A DNA stretch of 64,000 bases from Entomortierella parvispora E1425 (GCA_020891255.1 BQFW01000009.1:1811843-1875842); one strand, 5' to 3'; positions 19,568-24,992 are shown, numbered from the stretch's first letter. Notes: generated by a model from the sequence alone, not told the origin. Made by a program: numbers and translations.

Positions 19568-22500
19568 ATGCACTCCTCCTTCCCTCTTCGTCATCAACTC
19601 ATTCTCAAGCCAGAGCTCATTCACATTCCATTCACCGCGCTCCCATCGACTAGGAAAAAACAAAAAACGTGCGTAGGCTCACCCACGGTCACAGACCCCA
19701 CTCTCCACTTGAGCGCTCCACTTTGCCGGCCAACAACGACTCCTATCCCACAAAGCAGCCTTCCGCGCAAGAAGCTTTCCGACAGAGCCTCGCCAAGAAA
19801 AGGGAGACAACCACCACGCGGGAACAATCCAAAAGCAAGGACGTAATCGACGCACGCGCAACAACAAAAAAAAGGACTGATCGTCGCTGGGTCGTGATAG
19901 ATAACGTCCAGGATCATGTTGAAGTCGTTCCACGTTGCTCCTCTTGGGCAAAACTACACAGATTTCCTAGAGTCCAACGATGATACATCTCTGGCTACCT
20001 TCCTTCAGGAACGATTGGACAAGTACAAGGCATGTGTCCTTCAACTGACGCAGCAGCCCGATATTCTCAAGTCTGCCACCAGCTCAGTCGCTGCGCCCGC
20101 GGGTCAGAGAGGCGGGATCGATGCACTGGTCGATGGTCTTATTGCCATCTATGATGACACGCGTGCGGTCATGACTGCGGAGAACTGGGGTGCTTTGCCA
20201 GCATTTTGGGAACGATGTAAGTGAGGGAAGGCGTGTTGCCTCTTTGCAAGAGGTTGGAGTATGAATGACGACCGATCGCTAATGATCCATGATCCACCCG
20301 CCCCCAGTCGAGAGAATCGTCTCCCAACTCAAACTGCTCAGGGTGAACAAGGATGACTTTGAGACGATAAAGGCATTGACCCGTGGCCAGTATGGCAAGG
20401 TATAGCCAATCGCAGCGATCAATGCGCGGGATCTTTTGCAAGAGGAGAGTAGCTCATGCGTTATCGGTTTTTTCTCTCATCAAACCTAGGTTTCGATTGT
20501 CCGAAGTCGTCTAGATGGCAATATCTACGCTATGAAGACCCTAAACAAGATGTATATTCTCTCCCAGAAAGATGTAAGAGCAAATGGTTGTCTGATCGGT
20601 TTGGGGTGCGATGATCATGCGCGACGTTACCATGCTAAACTTGTACTTGGTCCACCCCAAATTAGAAAATTCTTTACATGGAGGAGAGGCAAGTCCTGGC
20701 AATCACCTCCGAGTGGTTCCCAAAACTGTATGTCGCATTCCAAGACGAAGTGAATCTTTACCTGGTCATGGAGTATGCTCCCGGCGGCGACTTGTACAGC
20801 ATTCTGGATAAGAAGCAGGACGAGTTGAACAGGGCGTTGGATGCCGACGGTGACAAGGACGAGGACGAAGGCAATGTGTCTGATGACGAGGATACAACCT
20901 TAACTGAAGATGAGATCCGGTTTTACATTGCAGAGATTGTTCTTGCAGTGTCTGAGCTTCATAGGAATCACTATATCCATCGGTAGGATTTCATATGGTC
21001 ACTCAAGATCTATGGAGGGATATTTCTTCAAGATAGGGTACTGATCCAGGACTGACTTTGGATCTGAAATGTGTGTCGAGTAGGGATCTCAAGCCTCAAA
21101 ATATTCTTTTGGACGCGACTGGTCATATCATGCTTGCCGATTTTGGTGCCTGTGCGAGGCTAGACGCCAGTGGTCAAGTAAGGAATGGCACTAGCTTTCT
21201 GTACATTGGACAATGACACTTGCTAACTCCATCATTCAGGTTCATGGCCAAACTGTTCCCCTAGGTACATGGGACTATATGTCTCCTGAGGTTGTGGATG
21301 CTCAATCTGGCGGGAAACCCTACGGTAAAGAGGTTGATTGGTGGGCCGTCGGAGTGGTCATGTTCGAATTGCTCGTTGGGGAGGCGCCTTTCTTTGCCGA
21401 GAGTGCCATGGGTATCATACGTCTGCTCCGAGACCATGAGGTATAAATCATCCTGTATTGACCAGGCTATCCCGTTTAGCTGCAACCACTAAAGCTGTTG
21501 TCTTCTTTTCTCATAGAAAAATCTAAGCTTTGAAAAAGTACCAGATATCAGCGACGAATGCAGGGATCTCATTACAAGGTGAGGATGTTTATTACACATC
21601 AAGAACACCAAGCACTGGTAGGCGGTCACTGACTTTGTCCGGCATTCGATTCGTTTTAGGCTTCTGGCAAAGAAGGAGAATCGACTTGGCAAGAACGGTG
21701 TGGAGGAGATCAAGGCGCATCCATTTTTCAAGGGTATTGACTGGGATAACATTCGCAAGAGTAAGTCAATTGTTTGTGCGTTCAAAAACAAAGTACGAGT
21801 GATGATAATTGACCGAATGTCCTAATATTCTATCGGCTTATTTGTAACCATAGCAACGCCGCCATTCCTCCCAGTCATTGAGACGCCAGACGATACCTCC
21901 AACTTTAGATTCGACGACGACTTGGACGGCAGTGATGAGACTATGCAGGATAAGCAGTCGACCGTTGTAGACTACCGAGGCGCGCTTTTGCGAAGATTCG
22001 AAGGCTATAATCTCGCTTTCATCGGGTACACTTTCCAGACCTTTGTCGACTTTTCAGGGATACCCGCCACTGTCGATAGTCATGCTACCCATCAGTCTTT
22101 GCAGGTCCCCAACTCCAAGGAGAACAAGTTTAGGAGAGATGGGTCATTAACAGGTCTGGACAAGGAAGATGTGGGTCGGATGCGAATGGAGCAGGAAATG
22201 TTTCGACTGTCGAGTGAACTAGCGACCAAGGAAGAACTTTTGGCGGAGCTCGATGCTGTCCATCAAGCACTTTTGACCCAGTATGACGATCAGGTTTCGA
22301 GGGCGACCGCAACTGAGTCTGAACTTTCCGCAAAACTGGTTGGGATTGCCGCTGTTGCCGGCCGTGAACGGGAGGAGGCCGAAGAAATCACCTTGGACCT
22401 GAAGAACTCGTTGGAGTCCCTTCAAAAAAAGACGCTGACTCTGGAGCACGAGAACGAATCGATGCGAGCAAAGTGCGCCGATCTGGAGAATGAGATTGAG

Positions 22501-24992
22501 CGCCAACGAGAGTCCATCCTGAAGCAGGAGATCGAAGGAGGAAAGGTGTCTCTTCTCAAGGCCGAGAACGAGGAGCTCAAGACTCAGAAAGAGAAGGACA
22601 TGTTGCAAGAAAATCAACTACTCTTGGCCGAAATGGAGAGAGGAAACCGGTTGCGGGAGGAAAACGAGGCTTTAAGACTGCAGATCAGAGATCAGGAAAA
22701 GCAAGATGAACAAACTGCTCAAGAGCACAAGAGCGCCATTTCCGAGCTGAAAAAGACTCTTCGAGGTGCTCAAGAGGATATCGCCGATCAACTCCAAACG
22801 CGCAAGAGGCTGGAAGATGAGCTGAAGCATCTAGGAGAGGCACAGGCGACATTGCAGGCTACACTGGCTAAAACTCAGGAGAAACTGGAGCAGCGCGATG
22901 TAGAGGTGGCTCAACTTACAAAGGCATGCGAGGCAGCTGTGGCGGCCATGGATTCGACTTCTGCATCAGGACCGAATGGCAGCGGCAGTGTTCGAACTAT
23001 CTACCCTTCAATGCTGAAACGGGAACGAGCCAGTAACAAAGTCCTGGTACAGCAACTGGAGGAGCAGGGCGAAAAGATTACTGAGCTCGAGAACAAGATC
23101 AAGATTCTTGAACAAGAGAAGAGTCGTCAACATGCCCTCCGTAGTCCAGACAGGGTTGCATCGCCTGTCAACTCTCTATGGTCCCACGATGCCCAGTCCA
23201 TTTCCAGCCCAACAAAGATGCTCATGGACCTTTGCGCTCCAGACGATTTCTCTGGCTGGATCCGAATTTCTTGGCCCTCGACCGAAAAAAGAAGTGTGAA
23301 GCAAAGCTGGAAGAAACAGTTCATTGTCCTGCACGACATGAAGATCTTTGCTTTGGACAAAGAGGGCGATCCTGCAACGTCTCCAAGTAGCAAACTTTTG
23401 GCTGATCTCCGGTAAGATAAGAAAATGATACTTGTAGTGTTGCCAATACTGACTTCGTGTTTTGTGGCTCTAATAGATCCGACTTTTTCTGCGTCCGCAC
23501 TGTAAACCGCTCAGAGCTAATTCATGCCACCGCCAAGGAACTAGAGTGCATCTTCCAAGTTCGATGTTCGAACGTTGGGACGGGGTCAACTACCTCCAAC
23601 TTTTCTGTAAGTGAGGCTCTCCTTGATGTAACAGATCCCACATTTGAACCAAAGCACTGACCGGATTCTTATAGACTGCCACTGGCGAGACTTACTCTCC
23701 CATAACACCCACTTCAGCTCATCCGATGACCCCTACTGCCTTGAGTCGTTCAGAACTTCAAACGCGGATTGAAAGTTTGAAAGTAGAGATCCAAAAGGAA
23801 GAGCAGATCAAACGGGGTGCCGAGTCCATGCAGGCAGCTTGGATGGGTAGCAAGGGATCAAACGAGGGCTACCTCAAGTCCAAGGAAAATGTCGATGCCT
23901 GTGTCAAGAATATCAGAGAGAAGACGTTTGAGTTGGAGAGACTCACGGGTCTTTTGGCAGCACCAGAGGTACAAAGGTTGCAAGAGGGTTATCTCGGATG
24001 AAACACCGAGACCTTGAATTAACTGCTTTCCTTTTTTTTGCTTTATTTTCATCTATCCTCCCTAGTTTTCGGTACAAACGCCAAAGTCAGACCGGGTAGA
24101 ACGATCCGAGTCTTCCCAGGAGCTGATATCAACGGAGCGTAGCTTGAAGATCAAGGAACTTGAGAAGCTGATCACCGTTGAGCGTCGCCACCTGGAAGCT
24201 GCCGAAAAGATGGCAGCCCCTCTCATGAACTCTGCGAGCAATGTTGTCCGTCGCAATTGGAAGTCGGCAGTTGAAGTCCAGATGGACAGTTCAAAGCAGC
24301 GCTTGGCGGGTTTGGTTGCTGAACTTGAAAGGTTGAACTCGGTAAGGATCCCACAAAGCATTGCACCTGCTAGAGACATCCACATCTTTGACATTGTGCT
24401 CACAGTCATATCCTTCCTCAATTGTCATCTAGGGCTCAAAGAGTACGTCGCCATTGCCAGTTGGACAAAGTTCTTGGACGCAACAGAGGGAGATCTATGG
24501 TCACTCGTTCCAACTCAAGCACTACACTATCCCAAAGTCATGTCACCAATGCCATGACGTTCTCTGGGGTTCACAAAAATCAGGCTACGAGTGTTCTGGT
24601 ACGTGCCTACGTCTTGTCCTGTTCCTCCATCTCATTTGAGATCTGCTATTAACGCCTCATTTCTTCGTACTTCTTTAGGCTGCAAGTATGTGGCGCACAA
24701 GCAGTGCTTAGAGCTGATGACCATCACTTGCCAGGAGCAGCAGGGACTACGCCACAGCCTCCCGATCTATTTATTGGCCCATGACAAGCATGAGCAGAAG
24801 CGCTGGATCCGGACCATTGAGTTGCATCGAAAACGCGTAGAGGTTGTCATGAACAACAACAGCAATGGCCAGAGCAATGTGGGCCGTGGGGTAGGGCCAG
24901 CGACGGCAGATTTTGGTCCTCGAGAGTCCTCCACGAACCTTGTACTTCAAGACGGCACGCTACCTGCGGTTCCGATGCCAACTTCGCCATAG
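19568..24992 (+). CDS. ROCK/MRCK (DMPK-family)-like AGC Ser/Thr kinase: kinase, coiled coil, split PH containing HR1-HR1-C1
   Basis: ROCK/MRCK-type N-cap ([13 protein letters not shown]...[12 protein letters not shown]), [27 protein letters not shown] tail [16 protein letters not shown] and a long coiled coil. PH first half SGWIRI...WKKQFIVL...[25 protein letters not shown]; two HR1-like helices; C1 domain HSFQLKHY...CHQC...C|[10 protein letters not shown]...C; PH second half [17 protein letters not shown]. All exons splice in frame; the first exon (19568-19840) is less certain. Confidence 0.9.

Follow-up and report, generated by a model that had tools for sequence, protein, structure and literature searches.

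The Rho-associated kinases ROCK1 and ROCK2 of animals consist of an N-terminal extension, an AGC kinase domain, a long coiled coil containing a Rho-binding domain (Rho_Binding, PF08912), and a C-terminal PH domain that is split by an inserted C1 domain. In the animal MRCK/Gek kinases, the C1 domain lies ahead of an unsplit PH domain, and the elements KELK, DMPK_coil, CNH, and CRIB are present. PKN1-3 and fungal Pkc1 carry at least two tandem antiparallel HR1 hairpins on an AGC kinase; these hairpins stand free in the N-terminal region, and the kinase belongs to the PKC type. Here, we describe a predicted gene of Entomortierella parvispora E1425 located in a stretch of 64,000 nucleotides (GCA_020891255.1 BQFW01000009.1:1811843-1875842), the whole of which is referred to as the window. 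The encoded protein has the domain order AGC kinase, coiled coil of about 320 residues, first part of a PH domain, HR1a, HR1b, C1, and last part of the PH domain. In contrast to PKN and Pkc1, its HR1 pair is C-terminal, nested in a loop of the PH domain, and combined with a DMPK-family kinase.

In a widely cited paper on ROCK, fungi are described as being without a ROCK gene, and Capsaspora is given as the point of origin of ROCK (PMC4686654). In contrast, the body plan of ROCK, consisting of a kinase, a coiled coil, and a PH domain split by C1, is present across non-Dikarya fungi, which changes the picture of how Rho-kinase signalling arose. To judge from the sequences, the Rho-sensing element of the fungal proteins appears to be of another type and at another position than in ROCK. 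The literature relevant to this architecture includes the work of Truebestein et al., and no paper describing a kinase with the arrangement PH-HR1-HR1-C1-PH was found in it; the sequences are public under automatic names. The Mortierellaceae orthologs are named 'MRCK alpha', 'MRCK gamma' or 'Rho-associated protein kinase 2' by NCBI. Kinome annotators recognised the family, as is evident from the database names 'AGC/DMPK/GEK' in Spizellomyces and 'AGC/DMPK/ROCK' in Allomyces, and AGC/DMPK/GEK kinases are also listed in a paper on the microsporidian kinome (PMC4280135).

The split PH domain and its insert

Pfam, homology, and structure searches were carried out with stop-free exon pieces or with orthologous proteins, while the joined gene model was used in local alignments, in the tree, and in scans with hidden Markov models (HMMs). 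The Pfam model PH_MRCK matches the end of exon 9 with 16.2 bits (profile positions 19-48) and exon 10 with 27.2 bits (66-100), and the full-length ortholog P0001 from Linnemannia zychae is matched with 54.9 bits. Exon 10 carries the segment that the original prediction, which had been made from the DNA alone, had quoted as the end of the first PH half. In the fungal proteins, the PH_MRCK match stops at profile positions 93-106 and C1 follows 200-260 residues further on. In a crab ROCK (P0209), by contrast, the match covers profile positions 10-93 and C1 follows after only 35 residues, while MRCK has its C1 ahead of the unsplit PH domain. By profile position, the fungal PH domain is thus interrupted within the loop that connects strands 6 and 7, at the same place as C1 is inserted in animal ROCK, and the longer gap of the fungal proteins holds the two PKN-type HR1 domains. 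The order of first PH part, C1, and last PH part was confirmed by local HMMs.

The C1 domain is recognised by C1_1 with 22.2 and 14.9 bits on exons 13 and 14, respectively, and with 38.6 bits on P0001. Its zinc-binding motif HX12CX2CX13CX2CX4HX2CX7C is complete across the junction of these two exons, and Foldseek returned C1 matches to the C1 domains of PKC and Munc13.

The structure of the module was predicted with AlphaFold2 for residues 866-1278 of the ortholog P0003, using 22 aligned sequences (mean predicted local distance difference test score, pLDDT, 71.6). From its N- to its C-terminus, the model starts with six strands plus a short helix (10-94), continues with a disordered linker, a pair of helical hairpins (135-204 and 215-288), C1 (307-360), and a single strand (374-377), and ends with a long helix (381-407). 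The pLDDT of the strands in 10-94 is mostly 83-92 by block and that of the C-terminal long helix is about 90. The top Foldseek match of this model is the split PH domain of ROCK II (2rov; E 2.4e-4, 30% identity), followed by the C1-PH-CNH module of MRCK1. When the structures were re-aligned, complete PH domains (100-120 residues) were placed on the model range from 4 to about 400; for ROCK II (2rov), 117/117 residues are aligned to model residues 8..398 with Z 12.2 and a root-mean-square deviation (rmsd) of 3.2. As the first part comprises only about 90 residues, the last strand and helix must occupy PH positions in these alignments. According to the model, the two halves fold together into one PH domain, and the predicted separation of a PH domain into two halves by an insert was borne out by both the break in the PH_MRCK match and the rejoining of the halves in the model.

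The insert between the halves contains two antiparallel helical hairpins. Pfam matches exon 11 with HR1_TOCA (21.1 bits) and HR1 (18.0 bits), and exon 12 with HR1 (25.2 bits, profile positions 1-61 of 67). The segment of P0003 holding the pair, scanned alone, reaches 44.6 bits with HR1 in two stretches and 30.3 bits with HR1_TOCA, the Pfam cut-offs of these models being 33.1 bits and 27 bits, respectively. At E<=0.01, HR1 is detected in 22/23 and HR1_TOCA in 21/23 orthologous pairs, including those from chytrids and an aphelid. Furthermore, profiles of the orthologous hairpins were searched against 177,635 PDB sequences. The HR1a profile, built from 19 orthologs, matches HR1a of PKN1 best (1cxz_B, E 0.008), with the HR1 domain of TOCA1 (5frg) among its top matches, and the top matches of the HR1b profile are HR1b chains of PKN1 (4nkg_B and 1urf_A). 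PKN1 was reached by these ortholog profiles only; when the two HR1 exons were used as single sequences, the PDB yielded no match at E<=1. A comparison with hhalign shows homology between the two fungal hairpins (probability 95.7%, E 9.5e-9).

In an AlphaFold2 model of the pair (mean pLDDT 81.6), the helices span residues 9-43 and 48-79 in the first hairpin, with block pLDDT values of 78-97, and residues 88-124 and 131-163 in the second. HR1a superimposes on HR1a of PKN1 (1cxz_B) over 73 residues with an rmsd of 2.0, and HR1b on HR1b of PKN1 (4nkg_B) over 66/66 residues with an rmsd of 1.2 Å. The helix-1 motif E-x-x-i-K-x-G-A-E, which aligns to PKN1, is kept. Within the Mortierellaceae, the hairpins are 72-77% identical, which is near the 80-84% of PH and C1 and far above the 43-46% of the three linkers; the hairpins thus behave as constrained domains. 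The claim that the two inserted hairpins score as HR1 held up with the scores of the P0003 pair and of the 22 pairs mentioned above, and the hairpins are HR1 domains. They are also distinct from the 'HR1' of ROCK, which is part of the coiled coil and has been described in a 2026 paper as a parallel coiled-coil dimer, unlike the hairpin of PKN (PMC13737125).

A PH domain joined directly to an antiparallel coiled-coil hairpin is also found in the PH-CC-Ex region of Tiam1/Tiam2, which was matched in the structural (4k2p, 3a8p) and profile searches (3a8n). In Tiam, however, the hairpin follows a complete PH domain instead of being inserted into it, and there is neither a C1 nor a kinase domain. 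This likeness is therefore probably an analogy only.

Kinase domain, coiled coil, and distribution

Residues 1-480 of P0001 were compared with PDB sequences. The highest scores were obtained with MRCK alpha (337 bits) and MRCK beta (325 bits), followed by ROCK2 (305 bits), ROCK1 (289 bits), DMPK (286 bits), Cbk1 (237 bits), STK38 (229 bits), and PKA (177 bits). The exon pieces of the window gave the same ranking. The Pfam model Pkinase matches exons 4, 5, and 6 as well as P0001 (183.8 bits). The first aligned residues of P0001 and MRCK beta (3tku_A) are 49 in the query and 27 in the chain, well ahead of the kinase domain, and at the position of the hydrophobic motif FIGYTF of this gene, ROCK and MRCK have FVGFTY and a chytrid has FVGYTY. 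With MRCK/Gek and DMPK, the fungal protein further shares the PH_MRCK match and the presence of C1. Based on these comparisons, the kinase is an AGC kinase of the DMPK/ROCK/MRCK family. An assignment to NDR/Cbk1 or PKC was rejected on the PDB scores (MRCK 337 versus Cbk1 237).

For the position within this family, a tree was calculated with IQ-TREE from the first 520 residues of 37 sequences, comprising this gene, 27 fungal, aphelid, and environmental sequences, the latter grouping with the former two, eight MRCK/Gek sequences, and one ROCK. The tree is unrooted, and its sole ROCK is the crab protein P0209 on a long branch; among the sequences retrieved there was no NDR, LATS, PKC, citron, or DMPK. 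A branch with support values of 99/98 separates ROCK and the eight MRCKs from all fungal and aphelid sequences, and the fungal groups follow fungal taxonomy. In this 37-sequence tree with its single ROCK, the fungal kinase does not group with ROCK apart from MRCK; it is nested in neither of them. The original prediction of a ROCK-like kinase was consequently correct in part. The DMPK-family character of the kinase and its N-terminal cap agrees with the PDB scores and the N-terminal extension. The narrower designation as a relative of ROCK was not supported, because the kinase is slightly nearer to MRCK by score, animal ROCK and MRCK form a group from which all fungal sequences are separated, and the Rho_Binding domain is absent. 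An Atlas feature search returned clusters of C-terminal ROCK fragments with values of 0.81 and 0.78, which are below the trusted level and serve as a lead only.

The region between the kinase and the PH domain has only weak matches to coiled-coil families. Neither exon 9 nor P0001 is matched by Rho_Binding at E<=1, whereas the crab ROCK P0209 is matched with 48.9 bits. At the same threshold, none of the MRCK elements CNH, CRIB, KELK, and DMPK_coil (PF00780, PF00786, PF15796, and PF08826) was found in P0001.

The module is not restricted to the Mortierellaceae. A single BLAST alignment spans it completely in Synchytrium, Batrachochytrium, Polyrhizophydium, Thamnocephalis, and Amoeboaphelidium, and colinearity is also seen in the multiple alignment. 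Local HMMs detected the order of first PH part, HR1a, HR1b, C1, and last PH part not only in this gene but also in the aphelid, Thamnocephalis, and many orders of chytrids, and they detected partial versions of the module in Endogone and Jimgerdemannia (Endogonales). The same HMMs detected C1 only in Mucorales, no part of the module in Kickxellales, and no HR1 at the module position in the crab ROCK and the MRCKs. Among the best 120 matches of either kinase-based search there is no protein from Dikarya, though animal MRCKs are present. The suggested spread in early-diverging fungi is therefore confirmed for chytrids, Zoopagomycota, Endogonales, Mortierellaceae, and an aphelid. An origin of the layout as an innovation of Mortierella was rejected, since it is colinear in chytrids, the aphelid, and Thamnocephalis. 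As the HR1 pair already occurs in chytrids and an aphelid, its nested position dates at least to the fungal stem. The HR1 module may have been acquired by a fungal kinase, as suggested earlier; the pair could equally be ancestral and have been lost in animals.

Two features of the kinase domain vary among the orthologs. The acidic insert occurs in orthologs from the Mortierellaceae but not in the aligned ROCK and MRCK structures, and the PDB alignments of exon 4 end before it. In addition, the activation-segment motif GTPDY reads GTWDY in this gene (window 21270-21272). Tryptophan is found at this position in 35 sequences, a count fitting the Mortierellaceae set, while chytrids, the aphelid, and animals have proline, and the Mucorales and Kickxellales sequences shown have cysteine.

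Proposed function and alternative explanations

The explanation that we prefer, with a probability of roughly 70%, is that a single gene encodes a dimeric, coiled-coil-tethered kinase of the DMPK/ROCK/MRCK family, in which a loop of the PH domain carries two PKN-type HR1 domains and then C1, and which is directed to its sites of action by this module as a coincidence detector at the membrane. PH and C1 would bind membrane lipids, and the HR1 hairpins would bind a GTP-loaded GTPase of the Rho family, which may be Rho1 or possibly Rac or Cdc42. As the Rho_Binding domain of ROCK and the CRIB element of MRCK are absent, the HR1 pair is the only recognisable GTPase-binding element of the protein and would stand in for both. 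The coiled-coil dimer would be anchored at sites of Rho activity, and the kinase domains would be kept at a distance, as has been proposed for ROCK. In animal cells, the PH-C1 tandem of ROCK1 alone is recruited to Rho activity zones (PMC13646499).

Several observations weigh against this explanation. Scanned singly, the exons of the window fall below the Pfam cut-off for HR1 (18.0 and 25.2 bits), and the E-values of the profile matches in the PDB are marginal (0.008-0.07). For the HR1 pair alone, Foldseek returned nothing at E<=0.001, and in an all-against-all structural search Snf7, CHMP4B, and designed hairpins score equal to HR1 of PKN1; because so many unrelated hairpins score equally, the fold is taken as consistent with HR1 and is not used as proof of it. 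The structure model is that of the ortholog P0003, which is 74% identical to this gene in the module. Finally, the proteins of Neocallimastigomycota, Blastocladiella, and Gonapodya keep the gap of about 200 amino acids, and HR1 was not detected in it by the local HMMs.

Another possibility is that the hairpins are derived from HR1 domains but no longer bind a GTPase and act in the PH-C1 module as a structural spacer, in dimerisation, or in autoinhibition. A helical hairpin is a generic fold, the HR1 scores are modest, and no GTPase binding is known for some HR1 domains, such as HR1c of PKN. Oligomerisation of HR1 has, moreover, been reported for PKN1, ROCK, and RTKN (PMC13737125). Against this, the hairpins show conservation on a par with PH and C1, in contrast to the drifting linkers, they keep the helix-1 motif aligned to PKN1, and the protein has no further GTPase-binding element that can be recognised, with Rho_Binding, CRIB, and CNH all absent, so that we regard this possibility as unlikely. 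More room is left for a kinase of the MRCK/Gek type that is an effector of Cdc42 or Rac instead of Rho and whose HR1 pair reads these GTPases in the manner of HR1b of PKN1 and the HR1 domains of the TOCA family. The kinase domain scores highest against MRCK, animal MRCKs are the best non-fungal matches, HR1a fits the TOCA-family model better than the classic HR1 model, and HR1 of TOCA1 is among the top profile matches. The tree, however, sets the fungal clade outside both ROCK and MRCK, all four of KELK, DMPK_coil, CNH, and CRIB are absent, and the protein resembles ROCK both in its C-terminal layout and in its best structural match, which makes an MRCK-type effector possible, if rather doubtful.

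It is very improbable that the single-gene model itself is an artefact, with the C-terminal exons belonging to another transcript or the HR1 exons being skipped in the main mRNA. Exons 11 and 12 are both symmetric phase-0 exons, so that skipping of either would be neutral for the reading frame, and several ortholog models are imperfect, such as P0024, in which the C1 intron is retained, and P0018, P0031, and P0028, which are fused to a dehydrogenase. Against this, the PH fold started by exons 9-10 is finished by a strand and a helix from the last exon, and the first and last PH parts are therefore sensible only in one protein. The same order has also been predicted independently in dozens of species from several fungal phyla, and the introns are short and uniform, with no in-frame stop or long gap between the parts.

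A kinase that senses a Rho-family GTPase through HR1 domains nested in its PH-C1 end would provide a natural test for the debate on whether this end of ROCK contributes to the recognition of Rho. It also points to a predicted effector of Rho in addition to Pkc1 in early-diverging fungi, among them Batrachochytrium, a pathogen of frogs, and Spizellomyces, a chytrid that can be transformed, in which the kinase would be open to study. Regarding its origin, we tentatively consider, without favouring it, that a kinase of the ROCK/MRCK type was already present in the last common ancestor of fungi and animals and detected Rho-GTP via HR1 domains in its PH-C1 module, and that non-Dikarya fungi kept this form while animals lost the hairpins. 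If this were true, the loss of the hairpins in animals would have taken place alongside the gain of the coiled-coil Rho site in ROCK and of CRIB in MRCK, and the recruitment of the ROCK1 PH-C1 tandem to Rho activity zones would be a remnant of the older mechanism.

Gene model, orthologs, and neighbouring sequences

The gene was delineated by three-frame translation of window positions 19400-25400 and inspection of the DNA. It comprises 14 exons with 1329 codons plus stop at 19916-24992 on the plus strand (Table 1), with the ATG at 19916 and the stop codon at 24990-24992. A script check gave 3990 coding bases, no internal stops, and 13 introns of 62-101 nucleotides (nt), all with GT..AG borders. 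All elements listed in the original prediction were found at their places on the plus strand, and that description was accurate, as the Pfam matches on the individual exons and the complete C1 motif across exons 13 and 14 show. Only its start at 19568 has to be corrected. This position lies in the 5' flank, and the coding start at 19916 matches the Met-Leu-Lys N-terminus of all orthologs. Each HR1 hairpin is encoded together with its upstream linker by one phase-0/phase-0 exon, a pattern of one exon per hairpin that fits exon duplication or shuffling.

Table 1. Positions of exons and protein features in the window (aa, amino acids)
Feature	Position	Strand	Basis or remark
Exon 1	19916-20216	+	
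Exon 2	20308-20399	+	
Exon 3	20490-20573	+	
Exon 4	20666-20982	+	
Exon 5	21084-21177	+	
Exon 6	21240-21440	+	
Exon 7	21517-21578	+	
Exon 8	21660-21760	+	
Exon 9	21854-23411	+	
Exon 10	23477-23606	+	
Exon 11	23675-23968	+	294 nt, phase 0/phase 0
Exon 12	24066-24341	+	276 nt, phase 0/phase 0
Exon 13	24433-24598	+	
Exon 14	24679-24992	+	
N-terminal extension, ~117 aa before the kinase, as in ROCK/MRCK/DMPK	19916..20357	+	P0001 versus MRCK beta 3tku_A
Protein kinase domain	20358..21729	+	exons 2-8; YAMK, HRDLKPQN, DFG intact
Acidic insert, ~36 aa, Asp/Glu-rich, inside the kinase domain	20807..20914	+	read from sequence
AGC C-terminal tail, hydrophobic motif FIGYTF at its end	21730..22035	+	sequence reading
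Central coiled-coil region, ~320 aa	22159..23130	+	heptad-rich, Glu/Lys/Leu-rich composition
PH first part (strands 1-6), spanning the exon 9/10 intron	23248..23564	+	PH_MRCK
HR1a, antiparallel helical hairpin, exon 11	23747..23956	+	HR1_TOCA/HR1, profile, AlphaFold2
HR1b, second antiparallel helical hairpin, exon 12	24138..24338	+	HR1, profile, AlphaFold2
C1 zinc finger, broken by the exon 13/14 intron 24599-24678	24502..24731	+	C1_1
PH last part (strand 7 and C-terminal helix)	24750..24842	+	AlphaFold2 model of ortholog

An exon piece of 529 aa was searched against a library of 1.8 billion representative proteins and gave only two matches, as E-values computed over the whole library are stringent for a query with a coiled coil. 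This search led to the first full-length ortholog, P0001, which has 1308 aa and is 75% identical. Further searches brought the number of Mortierellaceae orthologs to more than 35, with lengths of about 1200-1360 aa. More than 30 of the database proteins align colinearly with the gene model, starting at its residue 1 and extending to about 1280-1300. P0024 from Gryganskiella cystojenkinii matches best (85% identical over 1301 columns), and tblastn with this protein matched the same exons in the same order. The model of P0024 is itself flawed at residues ~960-990 and ~1215-1230. The end of the first PH part is missing, and C1 contains about 11 extra residues, as if an intron had been retained.

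A malate/lactate-dehydrogenase-like gene is located 1.1 kb downstream of the kinase gene on the same strand (window 26108-26992, +). In three Mortierellaceae database models (P0018, P0031, and P0028), the kinase is fused to the dehydrogenase, which looks like an annotation artefact and shows that the order of the two genes is conserved. The 5' flank of the kinase gene contains two microsatellites, (GTCTGTCTGTCC) x5 and (ACAG) x9, at window positions 19459-19524 and 19284-19319, respectively, which are approximately reverse complements of one another.

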